From: Chlorokybus atmophyticus | Lineage: Eukaryota > Plantae > Mesostigma and Chlorokybus algae | DNA length: 64,000 nt | NCBI GenBank assembly: GCA_009103225.1 | Contig: RHPI01001020.1 | Span: 68,905 to 132,904 of the forward strand | Direction: 5' to 3' | Part shown: positions 12,903 through 49,299 of the stretch, piece by piece | How the letters are laid out: every line of letters begins with the position of its first letter | How positions within the stretch are numbered: position 1 is the stretch's first letter | Position numbers and translations under genes: made by a program | The notes under the pieces: generated by a model | What the model was told of the DNA's origin: nothing | Seen by the model: only the letters and a program-made list of their open reading frames with translations | Database searches by the model: none

Positions 12903-15900
12903 ATGGAAGAGAACTCGATGCCCACCTCAAAAGAGGAAAGCTCGCAAAAAGAGCAATTATCCCGTGAGGAGGAGTTTCCATTTATGGAGGATATTTCCAA
13001 CGCGGATGATGCACCTGATGAGTTTCATGCTGCTAAGGATGTGAATGGCTTGGTGGAACCAGACGGGCCACCACCACTACCATTATTTGTGCAGCCTGAA
13101 ATCTTAATTTGCTTGACAAAACAGGAATTGATGAACCACTTTCTTGACACCTATGATGAGAAGCCTCGTGAGGCGGTTGTCTCGCTCGTCAACTTCCTCT
13201 TTCATGTGGCGAAAAAGATCTCAAAGCTCACCACCTTTATGGGGCGAGGTTGGGAGGGATCGATGGGTGAAGGCAAACGTGTTCTGAACATGATCGAGCG
13301 CTTTCAACGCTCTGACAGTGGCCCACCTGTTCATGCGCAAACTCGTCCTACCGAGTTTGTTCCCAACAAGCAAGCGGCAATTTTTGACTAGCTCGTGAAG
13401 CTGAGGCACTATGTCAACTCCCTTCACATTTCTGAGGAGGGGAAGTTGCGTGTAGCTGAGTTGCTGATTTCAAACGATGCTCTGGCAGAGTGGTACCGCC
13501 GTAAGTAACGTGATACGAACCTCGGGCGGGAAGTGAATCAGTTGCGCTCTTTCATGGAGCAGCGCTATGGTGACGCAGACCCTGCCTAGGTTGCTCGCAA
13601 CCAGCTGCACAATCTGCGTCAGAACGGGCGTCCGACTCAGCAGTATATCCAGGACTTCCAGTCTTTTGTCAGCAAGATTAATGCTGGCAAACTACCCATC
13701 AGTGATGCTGATCAGCTGGATATGTTCAGGCGTGGCTTGAACACAGATCTCGTGCAGCATGTGGCCGTCAACCCCGCGAGTTGGCAAGAGCGGGCCTCGA
13801 CGGATTTACCAATGCTGATGCAGATGGTTGTTGCTGTAGACAGTGTGAAGCGCTCTCACGCAAACATGCAAACCACAGCAAAAGAGGCAGCCCCGGCTTC
13901 AGCTGCAAAGCGCCCGGCCACTGAGAACAAACCTTTTGTGAAAAGGGCGAAAACATCTCAGCCTGCTGGCCCCTACAACGCGCCAAATCCACCATCACTT
14001 GCAACTTCTGCAGGAAGACAGGTCATGGGGAGGCCAAGTGCTATGCAAAGCAGAATGCATAGAAGGCCAAACAGCAGAAGGACAAGAAATAGGAATTGTC
14101 CGTGGTTGGTAGTTTGGTCGAGCAACGACTTTAACGACTTTAAAAACTCTGTACTTCTTGATAAAGTTTCTCCTCTTTGTAGTGTATCAGATGTATGGAT
14201 TGACATGAGCACACCACCTGTGTTGACAAATGCAAACGGTTGCGTTTTAATCAATGTTCTATTCTTTGAATTGGTAACTGCTGTTAAGCACTTACACGAG
14301 TTGCAAATACAACATGCTGTCACTGCATGTGTAGTTATCCCTCGATATCATGGCCCGTGGTCGCGATTGTTGAAAGGGGAGAAGTAATTATGCAACTCTC
14401 ACGCAAAAATACAGGTACTTCACCATCACAAGTGATCGTTATCAAGCCTGCTACCAATCACGGCATTCCGACATTAGCTACACTTGATGGTCACTCAGTG
14501 CCACTCAAATGGAGATTTGAGAGTAAACTTATGGGCACACCATGTACAGCATTGATTGATATTGTTGCAAACCATAACTTTGTTGAGCATGCTTGGGTGA
14601 AACGTAACAACATACCTTGAACACCGGTCACGTCGTATGTACGTGCTGCTGGTTCCGCCCTTAATTTACTTGGGGAGGTGAAGGAGCGTTTTGTTATTAA
14701 CAACCACAAGACTCGACCAGCTTTTATCGTGGTGGATTTAGGTATCCCCGGGGTGGATGTTGTTTTGAATGAACAGTGGCACACCGAAGCAGGTTTGCAA
14801 TTGGACTCTCGAGCAAATACATGCACCCTTCGTAGGGGTAAACGTAAGGTGACGTTAACCGCACATGTACTCGCACGTGTTGCTCGTGAGAATGTTCCGC
14901 TCCTCTCTACTATGCAACTGAACCGTTGCATGCGTAAACGTGGAAAAAGTATATTTGATGCACTTACGACAGGTAGAGACACTTGTTTAACAGGCCGTAA
15001 CTGACCCTGTGGTGCAATCACTGACGGAACAATACCCAGATGTATTTCAGGATGAACTCCCAGAGTTGCCTCCTGATAGAAACATACATCATACCATTCC
15101 GTTGGAGGAGGGGGCAAAGCCACCTTGGCGGCCTATCTAAAGGCTCAGTCCCTTGAAACACGTGGAAATGGAAAAATAGCTCAAAGATTCATTCGACAAA
15201 GGTTTGATAACAAAGAGCATATCTCCTTTTTGTGCACTAATTTTGTTTGTGCCCAAAAAGAATGGCAAGCTACACATGTGTATTGATTGCCGTGCGTTGA
15301 ACAAGGTAACCATGAAAAACAGATACCCTTTGCCTCGGATTGATGATTTGTTTGATAAGCTGTCAGGTGCAACAGTGTTCAGCACACTGGATTTGACAAA
15401 TGGTTATCATCAAATTAAAATCTACCCGTCAGATATACAAAAACCTGCATTTCGCACCCGACTAGGACAATTGGAGTATAAAGTGTTACCATTTGGGTTA
15501 ACAAATGCACCAGCTACATTTCAGACAGCAATGAACGCGGTATTTGCTGATGAATTGTACAAGTTTAGGTATATCTTGACGACATTATTGTGTTCAGCAA
15601 AACCCGGGAGGAACACCACAAGCATGTGGAATTGGTTCCAGCTAAGTTACGCGAACACAAATCTTATGCCAACCTATCCAAATGCAACTTTGCAAAGGAT
15701 GAACTGCCTTTTTTAGGGCATGTGATTGGCAAAGAAAGATTGAAACCAGATCCCCAAAAGGTGTGTGCGGGGAAGGATTGGCCACCACCCAAGGATGTAC
15801 ATCAGTTACGTGCTTTCTTGGGGCTAGCCAATTATTTTTGCAAGTTCGTGCGAGCATATTCTAGCATGGCAAATCCTTTAACATCTTTACTAAGAAAGGA

Positions 15901-17922
15901 TGTAAAACTTGTGTGGACGGAGGCACACGAGGTTGCTTTTACACGCATTAAAGATGCATTAACACAAGCCCCCTGTGTTGGCCTTCCCCGACCACACCAA
16001 GCCTTTTGTGGTGATCAGTGATGCTTCCACCATTGGGTGTGGGGCAGTCCTTCTACGGGATGACAGGCCATGTGCATATGAAAGCAAAAAGTTCATTCCT
16101 GCTGAACGTAATTACACAACCACTGAGCAGGAATTGCTCGGGGTGGTGCACGCACTGCGCACATGGCGTTGCTACTTGGAAGGTGTGGAGTTTTCAGTGA
16201 TTATTGATCACAACCCGCTCACATTCTTTCATACGCAACAAAACCTGTCGAGGCGGCAAGCTAGGTGGAATGAATTCATTTCTCGTTTCACTTTCACTTG
16301 GCAATACTGTCCGGGTCGCACCAATGTGGCGGATCCACTAAGGCGTAGCCCTGCTCTTTTGGCACTTACGCGCTCTCGAAGTACGCGTAATGTACAACAG
16401 CCTGAAGATCCTATTCAAAAGGAAGTGTCCACAGGTTATAACTCAGATGATTGGTTTAGCAGTCAAACTAACTTGCAACACTTTACTGGTGTTAGCAATC
16501 TGTGGTATAAAGGGGAGCAGCTGGCAATTCCCAACTCGGGCGACTTGCGTAAGCAATGCTTACATTCGGTGCATGACCCGCCGTATGCTGGGCATTTGGG
16601 GAAACATAAAACACTCAAAGCTGCGCAACAGTTATATTGGTGGCCGTTAATGTCAGCTGATGTGGATCAATATGTTCGCACATGTGGCGTGTGTCAGCGT
16701 AATAAGCCACTACGACTAAAACAAGCGGGATTGCTTAAACCATTGGTAATTCCAAAAAAAAGTGGGATAGTGTCAGTATGGATTTGATTACTGACCTACC
16801 TGAAACAACAGCCAAATACACTGCTATTGTGGTTTTTGTCGACCGTTTGACCAAAATGGTGCATTTTGCCCAGTGTTGCACAACTGTGAGTGCACGGGAT
16901 TTAGCACATTTATTTGTGCCTACGGTCTTTCGAGTTCATGGTGTATCGCGTGAGCTTATCACAGATTGTAATCCTCGGTTTGTCTCCAAGTTTTAGAGAG
17001 AAGTTTGTGAATTGTTGGGGGTAAAACAAAGCATGTCAACTGCTTTCCAATCGCAAACAGACGGACAAACTGAGCGAGCAAATTAATACTGGAAGAAATG
17101 CTTCGCCACTATGTGGCTCATAACCGTGCTGATTGGGATAGGTACTTGCCAATGGCAGAGTTCGCTGTGAACAACGCGTGGCAGGAAAGTGTAAAGGAAA
17201 CCCCATTTTTCTTGAATTATGGGATTCGCCCGAACACATCAGCGTCATTGCGTGTACCTCGCAATGCCCTAACTGTACCAGCGGCAAAGGAATTTGCCAC
17301 TGATATGCAGGAAAATTTAGCTCGAGCCAAGCTATGTCTGTCAGGAGCACAGGACAGGCAAAAAGCTTATGCCAATACACATCGAAAAATGGCCACTTTC
17401 GATGTCGGCGATAAAGTTTTGCATAACGCAAAGAACATAACCATCAAAGGTACTCGTGCTCGCAAGTTGCTGCCCCGATGGTTAGGTCCTTTCTCTATCA
17501 CTCATAGGGTTGGTACGCACGCTTATCGACTGCAATTGCCCCCAAGTGTGCGTATACACAACGTGTTCCATGTGAACTTGAAACCCTACCGCTCAGACGG
17601 TAGAACACAGCCTCCACCATCGCCAGTTGAGGTGGACAGCGAGCTCGAATACGAGGTAGAAGCTATATTGAACCATAAGCTAAATAGTCGAGGACGCGCA
17701 ACTTGCTATTTGGTGAAATGGAAAGGGTATGGCCAAGAACATAAAAGTTGGAAGCCCGACAGGCATCTTACGCATTGCCGCGAGTTGCTTCGAGCTTATT
17801 GGGATTCACCCTGTCACGTAAACTGTGGGCTTGGTTTTATGACAGACTGGCAGTGCAATTTCATTACCACCCTGTCATTTCCTGCTATCTCACTAGTTAC
17901 ATTTATACAAAACGAAGCTTGA
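12903..17922 (+). pseudogene. Chromovirus gag-pol (PR, RT, RNaseH, integrase, chromodomain) with stops and frameshifts
   Basis: [31 protein letters not shown]; RH VISDAS..GCGAVL, DHNPL; INT HDPPYAGHLG, MDLITDLP, VFVDRLTKMVHF; chromodomain EYEVEAILNHK..YLVKWKGYGQEHKSW. Confidence 0.93.
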
Positions 17923-17973
17923 TCAACTTGAGTTCAACGAGAATGTTGAAAACCTAAGTGGGGGGGGGGGGAA

Positions 17974-18493
17974 TGTAATGGGAGCAATCATAATAGGGGT
18001 ATTATTGCTACCTAAATAACACATTTTGTGTGAATAGATATTTAAACATGCTTATTTATACCTCTTTTCTACGGTTCCTCGCTTATTAAAAGCTATAATG
18101 CTTTATCATAGTGTAAATAAGTCCCAATGGGTGTAGAACCGCTTATTCAAGCCTATTTAATGTCAAATTTGATAAAATGTTGTCACTATCTCGATAGGTA
18201 CCTTACGATAGGTATCTTTCGACAGGTACCTTATTGATAGGTTCCTTATCTGAGCTGTGATTGGCTCACGCTACATTTCGTAACTACCCCATCTGTAGGG
18301 TCGATGTCTAGTTGTGAGTTAATTATCGAGAGGTATACATTTGATATACTCTTAATATAAAAGGTCACATCAAACTGATGTGAGGGACTTTCAGTTCTCT
18401 GCTCAGTGGCGGCCACGCCGCTGAAAAGCTTGTCATAGGCGGTGTGGGTGTTGGGTTAGAGGATTGAAGGGGCATCGCCGGCGACGGTTACAT
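17974..18493 (+). repeat. 3' LTR (520 bp)
   Basis: Direct repeat of 11517-12041, preceded by the polypurine tract. Confidence 0.95.
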
Positions 18494-26775: not shown

Positions 26776-29700
26776 ATGGCCGGGAGGCAATGGGAGGCGT
26801 TGCTGTTGCAGAGCAGCGACCTCGCCGCCGCTGCGGCTGTCCGCAAGGATGCCGCCCCTGCCCTGGGCACCACAGGCATCCCGCTCATTGAGCGCAGCAT
26901 AGACCAGCTTGAGGCGCTCTCTCGCCAGCTACGGGAGCGGTCTGGACCTGCTGGAGACGCTGGTAAGCACATGCAAGTGTGTGTGAAGTCAGTCGTTTGA
27001 CCTGAGCATGCGCTTTCACTGCTAAGCTCTGTTTTGAGGCCCCGTGCCTGGTGTGCAAGCGATGCAGAGCGTGCATGAATTGCATTTGAACGTTGGCAGC
27101 ATTGGTTGCATTTCTACTCAAGTCAACAAAAACGCTACACAATCGTGTTCACGCTTGGGTTGTGTTAACTTGTGTACATTGTGTGTTATCTAGTCTCTAC
27201 GCGTCATTCTGCTTGGTGTGCGGACAGGAAGCAGTGCGCACAACTTGTATACGCCGCCACTATGATATGTTGTTTCCCTGCGCTATTGCTACCACTGCAT
27301 GGCCTGTGTATGTGCAAGCAGCATTCAGGTACACGCTAACAGCACGCATGGTCTGACCGCATCATCACAACAAGAACCATCTCCTGGCAGACACATCAAA
27401 GAGCATCGCTGCCATTCGGCTCTTGGCGAGGGAGGGTGTGGATGCGGACAGGCTCAGCCGAGAGTTGCGAAGCTTCGAGCTGCGCGCGTCCGTGGACGAT
27501 GTGTTTCCCATTGATCACACACCAACATCCTTGCCAGAATACCTGAAACACCTGCACCAAGCAACACTGCTCACAGCCATCCACCAGGTGGGTTTGCCAC
27601 AGTGACGTGTGCATGCACTCTTTTGGTGCTTATCACCAACAGGGCATAGAGTATATTGGTGTCTTTCAGGCGCAAGCGCTTGCAAATGAGAGGTTTGAGG
27701 CCTTCATGGCGAACGCCATGCGCAGAGACTACGACAAAGAGAAGAGGCAATTTTTGCAATCGTTTGGCCGGTTACTCGCTTCGCCTTCTGTTCCCACCTC
27801 AACCTCTGTACAAGCAGTTCCAACACCAGGTGCAGCTCCCACAAAAGCCGCTGCATATGCTCAGGCTGTCAAGTCGCTTAATCAAGCAGTCACAAGTGGA
27901 CAACAGTTTGAGGTGGGTGTTCACATACCTTGGCAACAGACATGAATGAGTCTCATGTGGGCATTGTGTTATGTTACACGCTCAGTTGGTGACACTAACC
28001 ATTATATGCTGCAGGTGGTTTCAAGCTGTTTAGAGGCGTCCACTATGGGCGTGTCACGAGATCAAGCTGCAGCTCTTACCAACGTGTGGCGCCTGCTGGA
28101 CTGCTTAGTCAATGGAGCCGACAGCGTGCTTGGGCAGGTGCTGCATTGTGTACGGTCAATGCCGTGATACCGCTTGCATGCATGTTTATTGCGTCTTGTT
28201 GTTACGCAAGCGCAGGTGCGTGGAGCGCGAAGCTTTCTGGAGCAGGGCCACGTACAGTACATCATGGATGTCATCAACTCGCATCCATCACAGGTACGCT
28301 GCTTACTTCACAACAGCAATAGCCAGCTTGTGCGTTGCTGTGTTGTTATGTTGCTGCATGCCAGTCGTGTTGATGACGCCAGGGTGCTGCAATGCTTGCA
28401 CATCAATCACAATAGGCGCGATTGGGCGGGGCAACCAGCACCATAGACCGCATCAAGGCCTTTCTGCGTGTGAAGTTGAGGGATCAGGGGCCCCTGGACT
28501 TTGATGCAGAGAGCAGCAATGCCCGCTCCCCTCCAATTGACACAACGTGGTATCAAATCTTCTACTGCCTCAGATCCGGTTACTATGACGATGCTCTACA
28601 GGTAGGGTGCATGATGTGACGTCAACATGCATTTGCAGTCACTCTCGCATGCGCGTACTTGACTGCAACTGCGTACACACGCGCACGCATGCACATATAC
28701 ACCTATTTACACGCATGCACGCATGTTGGTCCAATTCTTTGCAGGTTGCAAAGAACTCGAGAGCATTGTCAGCCGCACGTGGAGGGGCTAGTTTTTCAGC
28801 AGCGCTTGCCGAATGGGTGCATAGCAAGGGTGTGGTTTCCAGTGCGACAGCTGAACCAGTGGCGGCTGAGTGCGAACGCATGCTCAGAACAGCAGACCGG
28901 CAGGTTGATAGCACATTGCAATGTCTGCAGTAAGCTTGTGTTGTTTTGTGTCCCAGTTGTAGGGACTTCTTGCTGCTGCCAGGGTCGACCAAGCTATGAA
29001 CGAATAAAGCTGCTGGTTTACGCAATTGTTGCGGGTCATTGGCGTGCAGTGGACAGGCTGCAAGTTGACACTCCCAGCCTGTTCAACACCATCCAAGACT
29101 TCATGTGGGTCAGGCTAGCATTGATACAGAAGGATGAGTCCACGTCTCCCAATGACTACACCATTAAGGATCTGCAGTTCTACCTGCGACAGTATCCGCC
29201 ATCACATTACAACAAGAACGGACTAGACCCTTTGCTATATGGCCAAGTGAGCGTCACAATGTGTGTGTGTGTGTATCTCGCACCGTGTACTTGTGCTGAT
29301 TATGTGTTTGCAGGTGTTGCTGCTCAGCCTTCAGTATGGTGACTTCTTGGCATATTTGGCTCGCGATCGCGTCACCGAGCCGTACCGCGTGGACGCTGTG
29401 CATTTCGCCATAGCCCTTTCCCACTACGGGGTAAGGTGTTCAAGCATGGCTTGTCAGTCCGAGCGCGCTAGTGTGTGTTTGTTTCTGACAGGTTTGCTGC
29501 TTGCAGTTGCTGCGATCCCGCACCGATGCCATGGACGAGTCCATCGACGTGGTGGCGGATCCAACGGCTTACATCCGCCAGTATGGCGAGAGCTTCCTCG
29601 CAACAGACCCCGCCACCGCCATGGAGTACTTTGCTTGCGCAGCGCGCGCTGCCGGTCCGCAGGGGGAACACGAGGAGCTGCTGGTAGGCCCTTCATTTCT

Positions 29701-33216: not shown

Positions 33217-33405
33217 GTGGTGTGCAGCGTGACGTGGCCGGCATTGACAGCGGCGGCGGCGGCGGCGGCAGAGCGAAGCTGCCAGAGTATTGAAGCTACC
33301 ATATCAAGCGACACAGGCCACCTCAGGTCTTGTTCATCGCCGCCGCCGCCGCCTCCTCTGCTTCTTGCTACAGCAGCAGGGAAAGCACACAGAGGGGTTG
33401 CAAGG

Positions 33406-35581: not shown

Positions 35582-36744
35582 GGGGGGCACAAGTGATGGT
35601 TCATATAGAAATCGAGTTGTAAACATTGTGGTAATGACGATTTGCATCAAGGAGCATACACGCCGTGTCCATTTCTCGTTGTGGACCTTGATTATATGCA
35701 TTAAAACAAAACAAATTGTAGCAAAATGTAATTGCAACTCCGATAATGCGTCGAATAATCGTTCTTGGAAGAGTTGGCAAGCACGCGGTTGCTGCTCCCG
35801 GCAAAAGTTCCCCAATCTATGGTTACTTTAATGGTACTTGACTGCTTGCGGATTTGCTTTATAACATTTCAAAAACACTTCATAACATGTCTTCATCTTA
35901 ACATTTGTAGGAGGCATTCAGTAACAATTATGTGACACTCAGATGGTTGCCATTTTCTGTGTTGCATGCTACAATAATAACATAATTGACAAAACTCCTT
36001 TATCAAAATTCATGAGAGTCAATGCGAATTCCACAATGAGCAAAGCACATAACGCTTCTCAATCTGAATGTGAAGATTTATCTCTGCAAAGGCATGTTAA
36101 CAATTCTGAACACGCGAAATCCAATACTTTGCAATGTTTTATGCACTACATGCAAAACTTGCACAAGCGTAATTGTTGTGTGCACCGTACTTTTTATTAA
36201 CGGCCGCATGCTTAAACGCATCCCGCATCGAAATTTATGTACATTGTATAATCAGCAACATGCTACGACACTAACATTCCTTGTAATGAACACCATGTCA
36301 ACTTTCCGTCTCTTTCCACATAGCCAGCAGATTCATGAGCAGTCGGGACGCTAATGGGAAGATGCTTATGCCGGCTGTCTGAGATTGACCAGACGGACGG
36401 TTGCAATGCAGTCTGGCGACGTCGATTTGGGGCACCCAAGTGTGAACGCAACTGATCGACAGCGTGGTTCTCGATGAGATCAGGGCACACGGTCGGCGCT
36501 GTTTTGGCCGGGACTGCCGTCTTGAACGGCTGTCAATCAGCTCCGACCGTTGTGGACATATGTCTGTTGGCGTGTTTAGTCGTAGCAAACAGCCGTTTTG
36601 TTGGCCCTGTTGTATCGATGGGATGTGTGGCTTGCTGTTGTATCAGCGCTGCACCGCATCGTGATATCGGTGTGGGTCAACGGTGGGCGATTCAAATGCT
36701 GGTAGAGTTGGCGGCGAGCATTCAGTGTGGTCTGTGTGCTGATG

Positions 36745-39700
36745 TCGGCGGCGGCAATGGCGGAGGAACAGGACGTTGCTGCGCTTGTCGAGCAGCAGCG
36801 GCTGCGTCTGGAAGAGTATGAAGCTGCACGCAAGGAACGCTGTGAAAGCCAGCGTGAGTATGCTAAGCGCCGTCGGGAGGAAGACAAGTATGTGGTCAGC
36901 CAGCTTAGGGAGGACTTGGGGTTGAAGAAGTCCAGGATGAATGCCACCGGTGTTTTCCTGCATGCACTGATTTCCGGCCGCACGTGGAGCTGGGTCGGAG
37001 ACAGTCTCGTCATGAAACCCAAGGAGGGGGTGAGTGGTGCGCACGTGCTGCACCTGCGCGCGAGCTGGGTGCTTGTTTTGTGCATGTCTGTTGTGTGGGG
37101 CTGACAAGATGTTGTGACGTGACCAGGATGTATTGCGTTTACCGGGGATTGCCCAAGGCGGCATGCCAGAGCAGGTGATATCGATGGTTGATGTGGTTGT
37201 TGGAGGTTGTCGCTGCCATGCTGGTGTGTTCTGTGTGTTCATGCGGATTCTGACATGCTCTGTGTGGCAGAACAATGGTGTAGACTTGGGCTCCTCAGAT
37301 TCCGAGGATGAAGACCAGGAGAACATCCCACCTATGTCGTCGCAGCTACAGAAGCGGCAGAAACAGCATCATGCAGTGGGTCAGCAGCAGGTGCCGCCTG
37401 CAGCTGCACTCCAACAGCAACCAAATGGAAAATGTGACCGCAACGGCAATCGTGTCCATATGGGGCCTAATTTGTCGAGACTCAATGGCAGCGCAAGAGT
37501 TATTCCGAGAACGCCTAAGACTCCTGGTGCTCAGGCTCAAGGTGGGCGCATGCAGTAGCGAGAAAGGGTTAGTCGACGCCAGGGACTGGTCGCTAGTCCC
37601 AGCGGTATTGCTATGACCGTGGTATTTCGTGGTTGATACCCACGTGTGTATATATATGTGAACATGTGCTGCTTCTTTGGATGTTGGTTTTGATTGGGGT
37701 TATGTTGTGTGTGCAGAACCTGCTCGGACTGCGAGTGTTGATGCTGCGTCTGTGAATGCTGGTGGTACTTGTAGACAGACCCGCATATTCAGCCAAGTCG
37801 AGGTACATGACTTGTCGAGTGTGCACTGTTGTCTGGGTGTGGTGTTTGTATGCAGCAGTGCATGTGCAAATTGTGTAGAGTACTGGGTATGCTGCTTGGC
37901 GAGTGCCTGCAGATGCATTTGGTGTGCCTGCTGTTGATTGAGGGCACAGTATCTGACATTGTATAAGTTGATGGACTTCTTGCTGAGGGCATCAAGTTGC
38001 AACAGGTACGATCTCAGCACTCAACACATTTCAAGTGTCCGTCTATCATGCAGTTCTTGAGGCTGGAAGTTGAGCGCTTGAAGCAAGAACTGGAGGTCTG
38101 CTGTGCTGAACGTCAACAATTGAGGACAGAACTGGCTGACAGTCAAGCTACGCTAGGAGGTCAGCATAAGAATGTCGATGATGATACTTGTGCCCAAATG
38201 GAGCGGGCACAGCAGGAGGCCGCTCGATGGCAGTCCAAATGGCAGGTGGGCCGGTATGCGCCTGTGGGGCGAGTGCATTCTGTTTAAAATTGAATGGCAT
38301 ATACAGAGTGTCTAACTTCGCCCATGCAGCGTTGTTCACTGTGGACCTTGAGGGTGGTCGTCCAGTCGGAATGACATGCACATGTTCTTGCAGGAAGTGC
38401 GCGAGCAGCTGCGGCAACAGGAGACACTGAATGAGAACAAGCGTGAGGAAGCTGCACAGACTGTGGAGGAAGTGCAGGAAGAGTTGGATAGCATGGTGCA
38501 TCAGTTGCAGGTGATGTTGTGCGGGTTACCTGAACCATTGGACATGGATGAGGTCTGGCGAAGGCGACTGTTGACGCTTGGTATTGTGCAGTTGTTGGAG
38601 ACGAGGGTGCATCAGGAGGGCGAGGCCTGCAGCAACGAGAGGCGGCGGCGACTCATTGCAGAGCAGGACCGCGATGGATTTCGTTCCCGACTGGCCGAGC
38701 TGGAGGACGTGATCGCTGGACTGCGTGACACGTTGCGGACCACCCCCATAACTCAAGCATCGCAGCATGATGCGGTAGTGGCAGAGGAGGTGCGCATGCT
38801 TTATGAAGATGGCGTGCGTGCTGTCGCCGAAGAGGAGGTGGTGGAAGCCTTGGATCTTGCAGTCAAGGATGTTGCTGCGCAACTGTTGCAACGTGATGCG
38901 GTAGTGCTCTTGACGGCTGTGGCTGCACAGTATGGTATCAAGCAAGCAAGGGTGTTGTTGAGAGCGGTGCAAGCAAAAATACCAGGCGCGTATCTCCACG
39001 TCACAGGTGCAAGGCAGCAAGGCACCTTGCTCATTGCTGCATGGGCTGATCCCTTCGCTTGCCTTCTGCGGTATGCCATGAGGGTGACCGATGTGCCTGC
39101 CTCAACGCATCATAAGCGGAGTGTTCCAGCAGCAGTCGATGTTGATGAAGTTCCTGCTGATGTGCTGCGCCTGCTCAGTCAACTCATGGATAGAGAGAGG
39201 CAAAGGCTGGTGGAGCGCAACAAAGTGGATCATGACCTGCGCTTTGTGGACTGGCAAGCAGAGTGGGATGCTTCGGGTGAACAGATTCGCAAGGTCTTTG
39301 GTGCGCTGACGGGCTTTACAGTGCTGGAGAAGCTGAAGACTCCCGGGCCACGGCAAGAGCACCTGACGACTGTGTCACGGAATAAGACCCTGTTTCTGAT
39401 GCATTCTGTTATTTATGCAAGGAGTAAGTGGGCATTCTCGCCACTGCATATGGCTATCACAGATGCTGTGGACACAAAAACGACCGGCAACAAGCTAATC
39501 AAGACCTTGAACCGGATTGGGGTCACCGTCAGCAGGAGCCATCTGGATCGGCACATACACCGGCGAGCTGTGCACAATTTGAACTCAGTAGCACGTCTGC
39601 AGCCAAAGCCAGGGATGCATGTGCTCGCATCAATTGACAACATGGACGTCAGAGCGGGACACCAGGCGAGATACAAAGGCCGGGCAACTGGAGACATCCA

Positions 39701-42700
39701 TGCAACCTCTACTCAACTTACCTCTACTGCTGGACGGGAATCTACCGGACCTTTGGAGCTCAATGTGAGTGCTTGCAATCTGGTTGCCAAAGTGCTTGCA
39801 AGCTGTTACAACTGCTGGTGAGCACTAAGTACTGACCGACGTTCGCTATGCTCGGTGCAGCTCACGCGCTGTCGCACGCTGCAAGAGGCGATGATGCCTG
39901 CGCCTGCGGAAGAGTCCATGCCGCCACCACCTACAAGACCGCATCAGACACCTACGGTGCGTAGCGCACCCATCCTCACGCTGCAGCCTGAGGAGAGATC
40001 AGCCCTGGAGACATTCAGGGCTACAATCCACAACACAGTAGTCTTTCGATTGCGCAAGGACAACCAAGATGGGTTACTTAATCTGAAGGATGACTGGGCC
40101 AGCTATCTCTGGAGTGCAACATCTGTGCCAGACCCGGTGGTGAACGACGTTGAGTACTTGCCTGTTCTACCTTTCTGTCCAGATAAGATCGACAACCTCA
40201 AGATAGCACTTCTGCATCTGCGAGCCAAAGTCGTCCTCAGTGACCCAGAAACCAAGATCTGCATCACTGGAGACCAGAAAACATTTGCTCTAATGGTGGC
40301 TCTGAAGAAGGCAGAGCCTGGATACTGGGAGTGGTTTGTGCCAATACCCGGTGACTTTCATGTGCTAATGAATATGCAACCGGTGTTGATAAAGATCTAT
40401 TTGGATGCGGGGTGAGATGCACTGGCACCAGAGGCAGGGTATTCAGCCACAACTGCACGAAACCACTTGGCGGACGGCTCCCATTGGAAGCGCATCAACA
40501 GCTTCCTGTGCAAAGGCTGGGAGACATTGTATCGCCGCATGTATGACCTGTGGTGGACTGACGCAGATGTGGACACTAAGGCAATATGTGAAGAGGACTT
40601 GAATCAACATGGTATCCATGCTACCAAGTCCAGGGGCTTCTTCGCGCGCTGGGCTGTAGAGCAGGCAATGCAAGATGATACATGGCAGCTGTGGTGGAAC
40701 TTTGTTGACAGGGACATGCTGCATTACCTAGGCCTTTTTTGCGCTGTTCGCCAGAAGATCTGGCACCTTAGGGTGGCCAGTTGGAAGGGTCTCAGTCCGC
40801 TGCCATTCGCTTGGGACCGCTTCCATTACCAACGCCTCATGACTATCCACCTGGCAGACCTGCAGGTCATCCCTGCATCCCTGCTGGACATGCTGAAAGC
40901 AGGTGGCTTTGCGTTGAGTTTGACGGGCGCTCCAGGTCGTCACGTGGCTCTGGACGAGGCTCATGAGTACCTGGTGAACAGGGACATGAAGATGGGTCTT
41001 TGCAAGCCAACCAATGAACAATTACGGCAGAGATCACAGTAACTTGGCGAACGGAGCCAATCTCAAAAGCAGCTGGGGCGTCAACTCCTGCTGGAGATTA
41101 CCCCTGCCATGAGCGACATGGACGCTGATGCAGACGATGACCACGACAGAGTCATGCGCACACTTGCAGTCGATGCATCCCGCTGCGGCAGTGATCTGAG
41201 GCATATGGCTGAGCTACTCGACAGCACAGACGCTCTAGCCAGACCTCCCAAGCATCAGTTGACACATCTAACTACTGGGTTACCGGCAACTCCTGCTGCA
41301 GCCGCAGACCTAGCAAGGCAGTACACTGTTGGTGTGGAGGCTATGAGCAGTTTCGTGCATGTGGAGATATGCAGAGAGGCACCCACCTGCAAGGTGACGC
41401 GCAGATTCAACCTCCACACAATGGCCACAGTAGAGAAACGAGCCACCAAACAGTCAACTATGCTCAAGCAGTATCGACAGGAAATGTTGGTGGCTAAGAG
41501 ACTCGCATCCAATGGTGCAGACAGCCAGACAGTCACTGCACGATACTGTGAACATCCCTGGGCGCTGTTTGATGAGTTGACAGGAAAGATGAGGTCTGGT
41601 GATAAGGCCAAGTTCCTGTCGGAGGTAGCCGCCCACGATGCCCCCTGCTGGTCAACGAATGCACCTGCTGGCGTGGAGTGCATTATCCTGGAAGGCATGT
41701 TCCTCATCAACCAAGAGTGCCATCTAGGACAGGGCACCATCAGAGACCACATCGCGCACCTCATGCGTGCATGTGTGCTCAGTAGGCTGGCCAATCCGAG
41801 TGTGCGCAGCGTGCATATTGTTTTCGACACACCTAGATGGCAAACTGGCGTGAAGTCTTCGCTGCAGCGCGCACGTGACGGCGCAGATGCAGCTTCGGGC
41901 AGGAATCTCACACTTGATACAGAGCTGCCCAAGTCCTGGCGTGATTTGCTGAAGGATAGAAGTTTGAAACGGGCTCTGTGCGAGCTCATCACAGCACATC
42001 TGCCTGCGATGGTGGAGTCTTACCTAAGGCTGGATCAGGAGCTGGTGATCGCTGGTGGCTCTGACTGTCCAGACGTGGGTGACCTAGCAAGGGTGGTTGC
42101 GCGCAGCAGGAGCAATGAGGTGTCGCTCACGTATGTGGAGGATTACATGTGCAACCACGGTGAAGCAGACTCCAGGGTGTGGGTGCATGCACACAGAGCC
42201 CCATACAACAACATCATGGTCTTCTCACCGGACACTGATGTCACGATGATAGGGATGGCCATCACCGAAAGCTGGGATCAGCCATTCAAGGATGTGACCG
42301 TTCAGGTGGCTCAGAATTCGCGTGTGGCAACACGCCCGCCATTCATTCTCCCTGAGTCGTCTAGCTGAGCATGTGAGTAGCATGCATCAGTTGCACAGCA
42401 TCACCGATCGATGACGTGGTTGGCTGCTCCTGCTAGTCTATGCGGCGACGGGCTGCGATACTTCATTTATAGGTGGAATCTCCAAGCAGTTTATATGGCG
42501 TACTGTGCTGGCACAGCATGCAGACTTCATCACGTCCGGTGTGACTGCAGAGGACCACGACATGTGCTTCTTTGTGCTGAGGTTGATCGGATGCTCCTAC
42601 TTCGAGAAGTACAGGTCCTCATTCGACAGCGGTACCCCTGCTTCATTGTACTTCTCACTGCATGGGCCTGAAGCAACCACCAACGACAAGGGTTATCTGT

Positions 42701-43236
42701 CAGACTGGCTGGAGGCAATACACAAGACAGCATGGAAGAAAACTGCAACTCCACGTGACACTATCCCCACTGTGGATGCCCTGTGGCTACATGCACTGAG
42801 ATCGGTATATGCCTGCAACATGTGGTTGCAGAGCTGTGAATCAGACATGCGTCTGCCAGAGTTGGCGGACTATGGCTTTCAACAAGTGGATGGCGTTTGG
42901 TGGCCAGTTCAAGACCTGCCAGAAAATATGGAGGCTGCTATTGCCAGACGCAATGTACTCATGCATGGATGCAAGTGCAAGGGGCGCTGCAACAATCTAC
43001 GATGCAGCTGCAAGAAAGCAGGCCAGACTTGCACAGACACTTGCCAATGTATTGGTTGCGAAAATATCCATATTCAGGATAGCAGCAATAACTCCAGCGC
43101 CGCCGCCCAGCCTCCATGCAGTACACATCAACCACCACCATCCAATGTTAACTCTGGAGTCGACATACCTGATGATGTCTATGATGCCGACAGCGATGTG
43201 GAGGATTTGACCGACATGGACGTGGACGACATCTAG
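36745..43236 (+). pseudogene. Academ transposase-XPG/FEN1-like nuclease-CXC finger polyprotein, spliced, disrupted
   Basis: DDE-core motifs SIDNMD..HATSTQ, ITGDQKTF, IPGDFHVLMN, VALDEAHE..VNRDMK; PIN/XPG motifs HIVFDTP, NHGEADSRV, FSPDTDV, ATGCDTSFIGGISK; C-terminal CxCx3Cx4CxCx6Cx3CxCx2C. Lesions: TGA 40413, TAA 41040, frameshift near 42340, TGA 42412. Confidence 0.82.
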
Positions 43237-43298
43237 CCAGCCATTGGGTGACTTGCCAGATGCCATGCCGTTGACCGTCGCCACCCCCCCCCGCTGCC

Positions 43299-43332
<34 letters not shown>

Positions 43333-43393
43333 CTCCCACATCCACTACTTCGACTTACTACACTTCACGTGAACTCTGCCCACTCACTACAGC

Positions 43394-43828
43394 ATGCACC
43401 CGATTATTAGGTCATTGTGTGCAAACTTAGGGTGCGGGGCGACGTATCCCAAACGCATGTCCTGCATGTCCTCCATGTCGATGCTGGCCAAAATCGGTCG
43501 CAAAGCCTCGCTGGTGTGCTCAGTGTGCAATGCTTACGTGGTGACCAACGGTCAGCGTGCTCGACTCTATCGCCACCAAGAACAATGCAGGGAGTACCAG
43601 AGTCTCCATGGGTACACCGCATCTTGCTGGCACCACCATGCTGCCGGTATGCACATCATTGATTGCAAAGGCCGCCACAAGTGCACAGCTCCGGAATTCT
43701 ACCACAGGCAGTGCTTTTGCAACCAGTGTGAGCACTCGACTTTCGAGTGGCACGGTGCCCCCTTGCGATACATGCCTTATATACGACCCGGCACTGTAAC
43801 TCCAGGCCAGATCGTTTCCCTCACAGCA
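43394..43828 (+). CDS. Cys/His-rich ORF (putative zinc-binding), possibly exon 1 of the Tudor-MTase gene
   Basis: CANLGC, CSVC...RHQEQC, CWHHH, HKC..HRQCFCNQCEH; GT donor at 43829 in phase 0. Confidence 0.45.
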
Positions 43829-44206
43829 GTAAGCTGCGACGTCATGCCGGCACAATCACGCAGTGTGCTCACGCACAGTGCCCACTTCGTCCTACATGAT
43901 GGCATATTTTGCGCAGAGTTAACGCCCACGATGCGGCCGTGGAGACATGCAGCAGAATGCTCTCCCGGATGACGCTGTGCCCGAACGACAGGTGGCAATA
44001 CCTGCCGCAGGGTGAGAGCGGGAAGTGCAACATCTAATGCAGCATTTCTCTCTGCAGCAGTGGAGGTATATGCTTGACGTCATCGCTCACGTGCACGATC
44101 ATGCACGTGTGCTTAGTGTCGCAGTCGCGCGTTCAAGCGCATGCGCATGCACTTGCAGTCAGTGCACGCGTTGCACGAGGCTGAGCAATTCCACATGATA
44201 TTGCAG

Positions 44207-45436
44207 GGTACAACTTCATCCTCAAGCAACATCAGCGATGTGCGCCAGAGATGCCTGCGTGGTGGGCACTCTTTGATAGGGCTGGATGTGCAGGTATACT
44301 GGCCAGTTGATAAAGCATGGTATCAGGGCTTCATATACGCCCATAACAGCCGACAAGGTACTGATAACTACTACATAGGCAGTATGCTTTCAGTGCCATC
44401 TTGCAACTGACCACCATGCACGTGCCTGTGTGCTCACGTTGCAGGTAGGCACAGTGTGCGCTTCCGGGATGGTGATGTCCAGCACATGGTCATAGACAAA
44501 CACAACATCGTGGTGTCTGTTGTGGTGGACGGCGCACCCCACTGCATGCGAATTGGCGGATGCCGTTTGCCAACCAACCGCAAGGCACCACCACCAGTCA
44601 TGATATTACCTTTGCACAGCCAGTCGACACCCTTGCTTGTGACACACAGCGCCCTTTCTTTGGACGGAGTGCCTCACAGACCCAAGTTGTTGGACCTGTG
44701 CTGCGGTGGGGGTGGAGCCAGCATGGGTTTGTATCGGGCCGGGTTTGACGTGACTGGCTGCGATATCCACCCACAGCCAGACTACCCTTTCACATTCATC
44801 CAAGGCGATGCTATGCAAGTAGACCTCCATCCTTATGATGTGATCTGGGCCAGTCCGCCTTGCCAAGCATTTTCCCGATGCATACCTGATTCGCAACGTC
44901 GCCAACACTCGAGCACGTGGCATCACAGCACACTCCTCCTGGGCCTGCGCGCACGCCTGTAAGAGAGCGGTAAACCTTTTGTGATCGAGAACATCCTTGA
45001 TGCATCTCAGCACATGCAGCCCAACATGGTGTTGTGTGGCACCATGTTTGGTCTTGCCACCTTCAGGCACAGAGTCTTCGAGACGAACCCTGTGGTCAGT
45101 GTCGACTTGGTGTGTGACCACAACTCCAAGCGCCTTGGTGTGCTGTCTGGACATCGCACTGAAGCATGCCACATGCGCATGCCGTTGGGCACCCGACAGA
45201 TGTACCCCGTTTACGGACAGGCAGCATCCCGTGGCACCATGGCAGGGTGGAGCTTAGCTATGGGCATTCATTGGATATCAGCAGAGTCTACATTAGTAGA
45301 GTGCATCCCCCCTGCCTACTCTGAATATGTAGGCAGGCAGATGTTGGCAGCTCTTGGATACGTACTGCGCAGCTCGCCTCTGTCGTGGGCACAGGAAACT
45401 GTTGGGGGATGCAACAACACTTTGAATAGCAATTGA
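44207..45436 (+). pseudogene. Tudor domain fused to phage/bacterial-type C5 cytosine methyltransferase; one intron (44358-44444), one premature TAA (44960-44962)
   Basis: Tudor LIGLDVQVYWPVDKAWYQGFI...G/RHSVRFRDGDVQ; MTase I LLDLCCGGGGASMG, II GCDIHP, III IQGDA, IV IWASPPCQAFS, VI VIENI, VIII FRHRVFETN, IX/X AMGIHW...ECIPPAYSEYVGRQM. Confidence 0.88.
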
Positions 45437-45895: not shown

Positions 45896-46960
45896 CTAGC
45901 CCACCAGTAGTGCACAGTTGCTCACACCAACTACCGGCCGCATCTGGCTCCACCTGGCGTTCCCATCAGCCACCGGGTCCTGCACAGCAATTATATTTAC
46001 AGTTGCAGGCATAGCCATCAGAGCGCCTGTGATGCGCGCACACAGCATCACGCGCGCACGCAATGGCTCACACAGCGTTCTGCCATCAGCCCACAACAAC
46101 CTCATCACACACAACTCGATGCTCTGGACATACTAACACTGGACGCCGCACACAAACTATGTAGCAAGTGCACAATGACAGTCGGTACACACCTCGTTCT
46201 ATGGGCATAACTGGCTGCCACCCTCCGCCCTCCACTGCAGGGGGTGGATGCGGCAAACCCGGGTTGTCATCGTCACCATCATCGCCGCCTTGCAAAGGAT
46301 GCAGACTCCATTGCCCCACTTCAAAAGGCAGCCATTCTGTGTCGTGCCATTGCTCAACCTAGTGTCGTCTACGTCCAGGGTCAGCATCACACTCAATGCC
46401 AATCACCCAGCGCGCCAGCGAGACACCGCCCACCACATGTTCAACTATCAACAGATCACTACCAAGGCGTGGAGGGAAGCCGGACGGCCTAAGCAACCTT
46501 TGCAAACTAAATCTAAACCCAAACCCACCAGGCAACTCAACATGCAACTCCCGTACACCAGCAACACCATCAACAGGCGTTCCCATTATATGCACCGGCC
46601 ATCCAATAGGTACCTTCGCAACAGGTGAGACAACATCAGAATTCCTCACATCACTCCGTCATTTACACACGCACTACTGCATCGAATGAGAACACTCACC
46701 TGCTCGTATGCAGACTGGTAAAATGCTCGACTCCTTCTGATGAAGGGGAGCGAACCGCCAAGAGCAAATGTCAACGACGGCGGGACTGCATCACCCACCC
46801 CTACAGGTGCCGCCATGTCCAGATCTAACCACCGATCAGGCTGCACCGGCACACGCCTGCCGCCGCCGCCCGCAACCACACCATCAACAACCCTTCTATC
46901 CCCAGCGACGCCTGCCAACCTACATAGCGTAACAATACGTCGATTTCGAGCTGGCGGCAA
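45896..46960 (-). pseudogene. Spliced gene of unknown function convergent on the MTase; in-frame TAG at 46359-46361; possible degenerate Tudor-like segment
   Basis: Exons 46960-46695 and 46612-46170 joined by a GT-AG intron; segment RWVIG...RRRH*VEQWHDTEWLPF..W resembles a Tudor beta-barrel pattern. Confidence 0.35.
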
Positions 46961-47385
46961 ACGGCGACAAACCGCTGTTACTAGACACGGAAAACCGTTT
47001 ACTCACAACCAACCAGCCCTGACCAAACGGTTGCCACAATCTGCTGACAGTCGGACAACACTGAGCTCCAGCACACTTTCGACTGCGGAACGCGCTCAAC
47101 CGACACTGATCCGTCAGCGCTGGGCGAAGCGGAGGGCCGTCGAGATGAGGGAATTCGACAACCACATCAAGCGCGGTTTGCAACTGTCAGGAGACGCCTG
47201 ACGACACCATATCGCGCGGAACACTGCGTCATTCACCAAGCACGGCGATGCACAGGACTGGCCGGGCCGGCACAAGCTTTGCCAGTGGGAAGGCCCCTTA
47301 GCGTCCTGACTGTGAGCAACTGACATGCAGCTGGTCACGTAAAGAAGTGATACATCATAACGTTAGTCCCCCTTCATCAAGTGCA

Positions 47386-47560: not shown

Positions 47561-49299
47561 CATCAATTCTGTCTCACCCGTCAAAAGTACACCCTCACGG
47601 CATGGAATTGCATGTGTGAACAAATGGCAATAATGATTCCATTGATAAGATAATTATAAATCACAGGGCGGTATTGGCACATATGGCCGCATGGACATGC
47701 GGGGACAGTGCATTTAACCTATACACGTTCGATTGAACAAATGCGATGGGACGATCCGTTGTAAATTACAACTGATCAATACCGTTCCTGCCCCCATCAT
47801 AATCAATCATACAGCACATACTTGTGTTATCGCTGCATAGGTGCCAAAAAAACCGTATGCAATACGCATAATACTGGAAGGACACAACTTTGAGTTTTTA
47901 TGTAGCAACGTATACAATAGATCAATTTCAAAGCAGTCTACTAAGATTGCTTAGAAATGTATCCATTGAATTGGTCCCACCATATATGAATAGGAGGAGC
48001 GCCGTCACGTTGCAGTGCGTCAATTCAGTTGCTGCGTAAACTAGGCGGTGACATCGTCGGAAACGCCGTTACCAAGTATGAGGTACAAAGCCGAAAGCTT
48101 CTATTACCGCTTGGGCGACGGCGAAGGAGAAACGGCATATTTGGTGTCGCGCGCATTATCAACACAGCGCAACACTGTACCGTGATCGTTCTAAGAAGCG
48201 CGTTTCCATTGGTACGAGGTTGCTCCCACCTTATGCCCCAAATAATCTTCTCACCCAATGTATTAACAACAATCTCACTCTGATCGTCACAATGCACGCT
48301 ACCGTTATTGCGACTGTTTTTCGTTTGGGCGGCCGCCAATGTATCAGCCGAACAAGAAAAGCTTGATGCACGTACGGTTCGCTCTTATCGCTACAACCAG
48401 TGCGGTAGCGATTCCGACGTGGAAGATAATAAGACTGGTGTGCCGTACGAGGGGAAGGTGTCAGCATGAATCTGCGCGCAACCCCCTCGGCGGAGGCGGA
48501 GGCGGCGGCAGAGGCGGCGGCGTGCGTGGCGCGGTCGGCAATGACGTGACTACTACGCGTCTGCGTCTTGTGCTTCTGTGGGAACCACTTTGCACCACTC
48601 CTTCTCAGGTGAGCAGCTCAATGCTGCCACACCAGCTTGGTGTTTTCCATTCCACAGCCCTCCTCGACTGCCGGCAATTAGGGTTGGCGTGATGGTGGCT
48701 GACTGTTGCGGTTGCCATTGAGCTTGTGGTCGTGGCCGTGGTTGTGGATGTTGCTGTTGTCATCGTCGCCGAAAATGGTTGTCCAGTATTTTGCTTCTGC
48801 CTGTATGCACGTAATGCGACATGTCGTCCAAAGCGACGAGGCCACATGCGCTTGCTCCTCGCAATCAATCAATCAGTCAAGCTCAAACTGTCTACTCATT
48901 CCAAGCAATTGCGTACAGCAGTGGTTCGCTCAATTTGTTGTGATCTATAGAGTGTGCGCTTCGCCTGAGGTCGCTCCGGACTGTCAGGTGTCGCACTGGT
49001 TGCTTGCAATGGAGTAGGAACTGCTGCTGTGTCACCCACACATGCAGGCCTGTGTGCACATGCGTATGTTCAGTATGCACGCACACATCCATATGCATAC
49101 GCTACACTCATGCGCATGCAACCACCTGCTTTGACTTGACACATACATACCACTTCATGTGCACATACATGTATACGTACACATCCACATACAAGTTCAT
49201 GCATGCATCAGTTGCGTGTGCAGATAGGCGTCACATCACATGCTTCAGATCGCTTATGTCAATCTAAACTTTGCAGGCTTGCACGTGGCGACAGCAGCC

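Follow-up and report, generated by a model that had tools for sequence, protein, structure and literature searches.

Can a cut-and-paste transposon of a nuclear genome carry its own chromatin-guided DNA methylation enzyme? The question is raised by a locus in the alga Chlorokybus atmophyticus, within a stretch of 64,000 nucleotides of contig RHPI01001020.1 (forward-strand positions 68,905 to 132,904; this whole stretch is called the window, and coordinates below are positions in it), where a gene that appears to join a Tudor domain to a C5-cytosine DNA methyltransferase (MTase) starts 158 bp downstream of the stop codon of a decayed transposase, on the same strand. The explanation that we consider probable, though well short of certain, is that the locus holds an inactivated copy of a multi-copy, transposon-associated Tudor-MTase gene, which was likely cargo of an Academ-like transposase and whose methylase derives from a branch of its enzyme family associated with giant viruses.

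The gene model that follows from the sequence comprises three exons, all on the forward strand, and confirms, at the level of predicted splicing, a Tudor domain joined to a small virus-type C5-cytosine methylase:

43394-43828, + strand, putative exon 1: a Cys/His-rich, zinc-finger-like open frame of 145 codons, beginning 158 bp past the transposase stop
43829-44206, + strand, putative intron 1: 378 nt, GT..AG, phase 0, donor GTAAGC at 43829 and acceptor CAG (AG at 44205-44206)
44207-44357, + strand, exon 2: first half of a Tudor domain of PDS5C/MSH6 type
44358-44444, + strand, predicted intron 2: 87 nt, GT..AG, phase 1
44445-45436, + strand, exon 3: second half of the Tudor domain, a linker, then the C5-MTase
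44445-44683, + strand, second half of the Tudor domain (to ~44520) and linker, fitted to the Tudor pattern by eye
44684-45436, + strand, compact C5-cytosine MTase domain of ~220 aa, without a large target-recognition domain, ending with the stop TGA 45434-45436
44960-44962, + strand, premature TAA of the MTase, falling between motifs IV and VI in a column that varies across the alignment

The intron 2 splice is predicted chiefly because the Tudor domain is complete only when this intron is removed. Read from the sequence, its removal restores the exon-3 frame and turns the split codon into GGT; left unspliced, the exon-2 frame terminates at TGA 44408-44410. The phase-1 GT..AG intron by which the initial annotation had joined Tudor and MTase is thus retained as a prediction, and the same holds for its proposal that a phase-0 donor at 43829 and a phase-0 acceptor at 44205-44206 would add the upstream Cys/His-rich frame: both sites are present, and the predicted junction of exon 1 to exon 2 is in frame. 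Inclusion of exon 1 is the weakest element of the gene model. Every coordinate of that annotation proved correct, and its central feature, a Tudor-C5 MTase fusion gene with predicted introns of the spliceosomal type, is upheld.

Exon 2 alone matches PDB entry 7de9 over residues 8-36 (E=7.2e-5), an entry whose identity was checked and which is the Tudor domain of Arabidopsis thaliana PDS5C bound to H3K4me1; its match to Pfam Tudor_KDM3B (0.004) lies under the family cutoff. The remaining strands of the domain fall in the first ~25 codons of exon 3, where the pattern fits by eye. A plant PDS5/MSH6-type Tudor motif, as originally described, accordingly agrees with the structural match for the half encoded by exon 2 and with the fit by eye for the second half. 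A search for small Tudor proteins that might serve as alignment partners gave no candidates.

The two halves of the MTase on either side of the premature stop were searched separately, and the alignment was made with an X at the stop. A frame scan finds the MTase open in one frame from 44657 to 45433 apart from TAA 44960-44962, which is also the sole in-frame stop across all three exons, as the initial annotation had it. The domain aligns end to end with C5-MTases of ~210 aa, at ~45% identity over ~210 aa. Its motif I, the S-adenosylmethionine-binding loop (FxGxG), reads DLCCGGGGASMG where relatives have LFCGAGGASMG, with the conserved G columns kept (the motif is given as CCGGGG in the MTase); the catalytic Pro-Cys of motif IV lies in ASPPCQ, where S, P, P, C and Q are all kept in columns of 93-99% conservation among relatives; motif VI is IENI, a conservative V>I change; motif VIII is FRHRVFE; and motif X is present as AMGIHW..IPPAYSEYVG. 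Among 231 relatives, 49 alignment columns reach at least 85% conservation, and the MTase keeps 47 of them, the exceptions being V>I and G>A. The earlier description of a C5-MTase with all its motifs, catalytic PC included, therefore fits the alignment for motifs I, IV, VI, VIII and X, and apart from the single stop the enzyme looks intact. The TAA at 44960 would cut the enzyme before motif VI, which makes this copy a dead one unless the codon stems from an error in the assembly or is suppressed by readthrough; in two public low-coverage DNA runs of the same organism (X1 and X2), no contig spans the TAA independently of the assembly.

To which methylases is this enzyme related? It had been assigned to a compact phage/actinophage-type family and set apart from DNMT1, DNMT3, CMT and DRM, and the searches agree with that assignment. 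With the N-terminal half as query, phrog_363 ('DNA methyltransferase') is matched at E=1.7e-24 and 800 homologous proteins of ~200-290 aa are found, while by tblastn each half matches ~300 genomes of actinophages and Paenibacillus phages (1e-17 to 1e-21) in genes annotated as DNA (cytosine) methyltransferase. In the PDB, chains of DNMT1 and DNMT3 are absent from the matches at E<=1, and the only C5-MTases matched are the bacterial M.HhaI (0.17) and 3g7u (0.034).

The nearest kin, by contrast, are not the phages and actinobacteria to which the enzyme had first been likened. An exhaustive, profile-free comparison of the C-terminal half with 1.84 billion representatives gave no sequence above 54% identity, and the top-scoring one, P0126, has 50%. 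The top-scoring relatives are longer proteins and have extra motifs in common with the window MTase, C.H.S..LG and QM(Y/F)PVYG..RGT..W. The contigs that encode them are densely packed with genes and lack introns: L004, 245 kb long, encodes a PolB of 1173 aa and an Rpb1 that bears an intein; L003 encodes a ribonucleotide reductase small subunit, a U-box protein and topoisomerase II; and L006 is a marine contig, gene-dense in the style of L003 and L004. From this gene content we infer that the three are giant-virus contigs. In a careful maximum-likelihood (ML) tree (59 rows, LG+C20), the window MTase groups with P0127, P0128, P0243 and the MBD-bearing P0126, P0191 and P0200 with support of 97/95; a second virus-context clade (P0134, P0140, P0201) also stands apart from the prokaryote/phage-type group, and all four phage reference sequences fall inside that group and outside the window clade. 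A quick tree of 90 rows is consistent with this placement of the window MTase (SH-aLRT 98). On phylogeny, then, membership of a phage-type family stands and immediate grouping with phages does not, its place being taken by the separate 97/95 clade with giant-virus-like sequences: 'phage-type' is right for the MTase family, and the immediate kin are, as judged from their contigs, giant-virus-like.

Some of these relatives are themselves fused to eukaryotic reader domains. An MBD lies between motifs VIII and X, at the position expected for a target-recognition domain, in P0126, P0191 and P0200 (contigs L001, L020 and L019), and P0201 (L017/L018) has an N-terminal zf-CW. By these domain matches, members of the giant-virus-associated branch have acquired eukaryotic readers repeatedly, with MBD and zf-CW in the relatives and the predicted Tudor of the window as a third reader type on the same enzyme lineage; the MBD fusions suggest that giant viruses carry enzymes that would both read and write 5-methylcytosine (5mC). 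Two further arrangements were seen among the relatives. On L006 a separate gene with a faint MBD lies near the methylase gene, and in four proteins (P0129, P0133, P0131, P0137) the whole short methylase domain is tandemly duplicated in one polypeptide of ~377-453 aa.

What is the element beside the gene? The adjoining frame, also on the forward strand, can be laid out as follows:

38352-43236, + strand, decayed transposase frame: frame 0 to 42317, frame +1 from 42346, with the true stop TAG at 43234-43236
39819-39821 (TGA), 40413-40415 (TGA), 41040-41042 (TAA), 42318-42345 (frameshift) and 42412-42414 (TGA), + strand, transposase lesions
39822-41039, + strand, DDE-type core, DUF6589-like, with GDQ... 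and ..ALDEAHE motifs
41661-42480, + strand, XPG/FEN-like (PIN-like 5' nuclease) domain, with conserved acidic motifs ILEGMF, VHIVFD, GEADSRVW, SPDTDV and TGCD
42964-43065, + strand, C-terminal transposase tail: Cys-rich motif, CXC/TCR-like (Pfam TCR, MSL2-CXC)

Comparison of three proteins (P0294, P0295, P0297) with the window by tblastn gave colinear high-scoring segment pairs with a frame switch, the best with an environmental protein at E=2e-41 and with a Mytilus protein at 4e-40. Animal proteins resembling those of transposable elements (TEs) run colinear with the frame from ...ALDEAHE through the nuclease-like domain into the C-terminal region (Mytilus P0295 aligns from 40773 onward), and it is this alignment that fixes the lesions. 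The DDE core matches Pfam DUF6589 at E=2.3e-4, under the cutoff, and 65 named ESM Atlas clusters, drawn from Arthropoda, Mucoromycota and Basidiomycota, score at least 0.9 and carry DUF6589. The tail matches Pfam TCR at E=3.4e-4 (21.3 bits against a cutoff of 23.5) and MSL2-CXC at 1.5e-3, and related Atlas clusters also have TCR. For the nuclease region there was no Pfam XPG match, and its alignment profile found only human EXO1 in the PDB (E 0.11); its GCD motif lies within the frame-shifted segment pair. In an AlphaFold2 model of medium confidence (overall predicted local distance difference test score 50.6, usable at residues 207-420), VIA-align gave rows for FEN, XRN1, T5 exonuclease, GEN1 and EXO1 at Z 6-8, and Foldseek on the same model found nothing significant. 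The relatives of the transposase occur in arthropods, molluscs, Mucoromycota and Basidiomycota, which are taxa with reported Academ elements, and on these similarities the transposase is plausibly an Academ. As had been claimed, a decayed transposase adjoins the gene on the same strand, here across a gap of 158 bp; one of its domains is XPG-like and its tail is Cys-rich.

Several other explanations of the broken frame were rejected. For the TGAs at 39819 and 40413, read as tiny introns on account of their GGTGAG context, no acceptor restores the frame. An intron at 42373-42472 and a frameshift placed by eye near 42470 both give way to the tblastn alignment with animal homologues, which puts the shift at 42318-42345 and leaves the stop at 42412 besides. 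Reading TAA and TAG as Gln under an alternative code fails on the fact that most of the in-frame stops are TGA.

As to the stops themselves, all five premature ones in the two genes are TGA (39819, 40413, 42412) or TAA (41040, 44960), none is TAG, and two of the TGAs stand in a GGTGAG context. Decay of a methylated element through C>T / G>A changes could give this pattern, with the caveat that the direction of change is not inferable from one copy.

Does the methylase gene belong to the transposon? Runs X1 and X2 include contigs that match the locus exactly, with intron 2 present and unspliced; X1 contains DNA, because it is an X1 contig that carries the unspliced intron. Besides these exact contigs, both runs gave diverged ones over both the MTase and the transposase. 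Relative to the window, the diverged contigs show 9 synonymous and 4 nonsynonymous codon changes in the MTase at 44728-44771, exclusively synonymous changes (5/5) at 45293-45316, and 11 synonymous against 4 nonsynonymous in the transposase at 42138-42278. Because diverged paralogues are present and their differences are mostly synonymous, both MTase and transposase are, on the evidence of these reads, multi-copy in this organism and under coding constraint, which is what would be expected of a functional TE family. CpG depletion is also common to the region from ~38 to 46 kb, with observed/expected ratios of 0.56-0.71 as compared with 0.9-1.0 downstream. Lesions number 5 in ~1630 codons of the transposase and 1 in ~525 codons of the MTase gene, where ~1.6 would be expected at an equal rate, a comparison without power; the densities are compatible with equal age of the two genes. 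From adjacency, common strand, multi-copy state and CpG depletion, the methylase gene is likely transposon cargo, a status that we infer rather than demonstrate because terminal inverted repeats (TIRs) and target-site duplications (TSDs) were not found here.

The search for such boundaries, by seed-based matching, blastn-short and Smith-Waterman alignment with shuffles, compared 33-38.4 kb with 45.4-50.5 kb and found no TIR or TSD above chance. The copy may be too decayed or shortened for its ends to be recognised. The best TIR candidate pairs 36340-36354 with 47298-47312 and scores no better than chance. Part of the gap between transposase and exon 1 is a GCC/GCCGCC microsatellite (43276-43346); it pairs inversely with GGC runs at 33239-33271 and 48495-48546 and was discarded as a TIR on account of its low complexity. 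At 46694-46725, a 32-bp stretch has the same foreign flanks in X1 and X2 contigs, and is a short repeat common to another locus. The open reading frames on either side of the copy showed no OTU domain.

The missing boundary is one of a number of results that weigh against an inactivated member of a mobile Tudor-MTase family. No second copy was found within the 64-kb window, and the JGI metagenomes gave no close copy, only five distant matches. The evidence of constraint comes from a few short contigs, in which several paralogues may be mixed. The splice junctions are predictions; Pfam and ESM Atlas searches with exon 1 found no homologue, and the second half of the Tudor domain, a segment too short to score alone, had no Pfam or PDB match. 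In Pfam PF00145 the N-terminal half of the MTase, searched in pieces owing to the stop, scores 20.1 bits, below the cutoff of 22, and the C-terminal half, likewise a half-protein query, has no match; intact relatives pass PF00145 at 25-56 bits, their Pfam match spanning motifs I-VI only. We know of no member of the short MTase family with a demonstrated substrate.

The lack of a TIR or TSD tying the MTase gene to the transposase would be explained if the gene were a stand-alone, giant-virus-derived 'orphan DNMT', laterally acquired and duplicated, that merely lies beside a transposon remnant. Its nearest relatives on giant-virus-like contigs fit such an origin, and virus-derived orphan DNMTs are reported from many eukaryotes, with six in Klebsormidium nitens (PMC12344493). 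Chance adjacency would nevertheless have to place two genes on the same strand only 158 bp apart, both of them multi-copy with similar divergence and constraint and both within the same CpG-depleted tract, and the published orphans are said to be without companion domains (PMC12344493), whereas the gene here has a reader and introns; we regard this explanation as rather unlikely. A more inclusive viral origin, in which methylase and transposon were both inherited from the genome of an endogenised giant virus of which the locus is a fragment, could draw on the same viral relatives and on the known case of a virus-resident DNA transposon with a C5-MTase, Mariner-1_OLpv (PMC3627910). It sits badly with two introns of the spliceosomal type, with a plant-type Tudor domain, with animal and fungal TE-like proteins as the relatives of the transposase, and with flanks that consist of host and retrotransposon sequence (a Nup93/Nic96 exon, a chromovirus) and hold no viral hallmark genes, and we consider it very improbable.

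The third alternative concerns the enzyme and not its carrier. If the family were not a writer of 5mC on chromatin, acting instead on RNA or another substrate or persisting as a catalytically irrelevant relic, the reader-writer model would fail for intact copies too. The lack of a large target-recognition domain and a Pfam match limited to motifs I-VI leave room for this, as does the observation that orphan DNMTs are not assignable to DNA or RNA by sequence alone (PMC12344493). Set against it are the full set of C5-DNA-MTase catalytic motifs conserved across 231 relatives, the annotation of the phage members as DNA (cytosine) methyltransferases, and sister proteins in which an MBD replaces the target-recognition domain, an arrangement sensible only for DNA; this alternative seems to us improbable.

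If the locus is indeed a dead member of a transposon-borne Tudor-MTase family, how might its intact copies work? The aromatic cage of the Tudor domain would dock on methylated H3 tails, by analogy with PDS5C on H3K4me1, and the tethered methylase would write 5mC onto nearby DNA, the DNA substrate itself being presumed. Such a protein would be a parasite-encoded reader-writer module comparable to CMT with its chromodomain or DNMT3 with its PWWP, and the MBD-bearing sister proteins suggest a parallel design in which 5mC is read and 5mC is written. The locus suggests that a DNA transposon can bring along a methylation enzyme of its own that is guided by chromatin. That intact cassettes, pairing a giant-virus methylase with a plant H3K4me1-type reader, are active epigenetic writers in more than one nuclear DNA transposon superfamily is a speculative extension which we think possible and lean against. 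Were they active writers, the parasite itself would place cytosine methylation on chosen chromatin; their purpose could be disguise as a gene body or the tuning of the element's own activity, and some of the 'orphan DNMTs' of charophyte algae could belong to the cassette family.

The plant Tudors of PDS5C/RDM15 and MSH6 are the closest likeness for the reader, its first half matching 7de9, and in plants such a Tudor tethers a DNA-acting enzyme to H3K4me1 chromatin; the difference is that here the Tudor's predicted partner is a methylase. Reader-writer DNMTs are familiar from CMT, whose chromodomain reads H3K9me2, and from DNMT3, whose PWWP reads H3K36me. ChloroDNMT-PWWP is a further one (PMC12344493). 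The gene here has in common with all three a histone-methyl reader fused to a C5 methylase, and differs in using another member of the reader fold family and another methylase lineage, and in being, on the cargo reading, encoded by a parasite and not by the host. Fungal KDZ transposons, reportedly treated by Iyer et al. in 2014, are said to carry TET/JBP genes, and thus likewise associate a eukaryotic DNA transposon with a gene for a DNA-base-modifying enzyme; that enzyme is a 5mC oxidase and not a methylase, and the transposase superfamily is also different.

Among TE-encoded methylases, the retrotransposon-borne DNMTs KnitGypsy-Dnmt3 of Klebsormidium nitens and SymbioLINE/SymbioDIRS of Symbiodinium (de Mendoza et al. 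2018, PMC5890265) resemble the present case in that a TE encodes a C5-MTase, that copies are under purifying selection and that one example comes from a charophyte alga. These are, however, domains of a Pol or ORF1 polyprotein, of eukaryotic Dnmt3 type and without introns (PMC5890265), whereas here a separate, reader-fused gene with predicted splicing and a virus/phage-type methylase stands beside a DDE cut-and-paste transposase. The initial annotation knew TE-borne C5-DNMTs from retrotransposons alone, and that limit no longer holds: Mariner-1_OLpv and Mariner-2_PGv, DNA transposons resident in phycodnaviruses (Bao & Jurka 2013, PMC3627910), are cut-and-paste elements with the MTase as a separate open reading frame in a giant-virus setting, and Mariner-1_OLpv is a precedent in a DNA transposon. 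They belong to Tc1/mariner, reside in viral genomes and combine the MTase with a restriction-type endonuclease (restriction-modification logic), with no chromatin reader or introns. The short phage C5-MTases (phrog_363; actinophages and Paenibacillus phages, ~215-235 aa) have the same compact domain and motifs as the window MTase, which differs from them in its separate, well-supported giant-virus-like clade and its fusion to eukaryotic domains. With the virus-derived 'orphan' DNMTs (Mol Biol Evol 2025, PMC12344493), which are without companion domains and number six in K. nitens, the gene shares a lineage-restricted occurrence outside DNMT1/3/5 and a probable viral source; unlike the gene here, those are not linked to DNA transposons (PMC12344493). 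Capture of chromatin readers by TEs has precedent in the literature, of which our coverage was incomplete and in which we found no account of a nuclear cut-and-paste transposon with a spliced, Tudor-fused methylase gene.

The present copy, being dead, is of value as one dated member of a family. Should intact copies prove active, a genomic parasite would not only undergo the silencing mark of its host but also write it, under the guidance of chromatin state, and the passage of giant-virus methylases into eukaryotic chromatin biology would become visible, their sisters already bearing MBD or zf-CW. The enzyme would moreover be a reader-writer of compact and naturally modular build, easily tested.

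The whole window is eukaryotic, with ~53% GC and host genes intermixed with retrotransposons. About 9 kb upstream of the transposase, an exon-sized open reading frame for the nucleoporin Nup93/Nic96 (28659-29339, + strand, E=2.8e-11) marks a host gene. Two retrotransposons lie further upstream on the same strand. One, at 13700-18000, is of the Ty3/gypsy chromovirus type, with reverse transcriptase-RNase H and an integrase zinc-binding domain at 15975-16784 and an integrase SH3 domain and chromodomain at 17098-17919. The other, at 1000-5000, is a decayed long terminal repeat retrotransposon in which the open reading frames of at least 90 aa at ~1750-2700 had no Pfam match, with a reverse transcriptase at 3374-3691, an RNase H at 3663-4088 and a trace of an integrase zinc-binding domain at 4550-4933.

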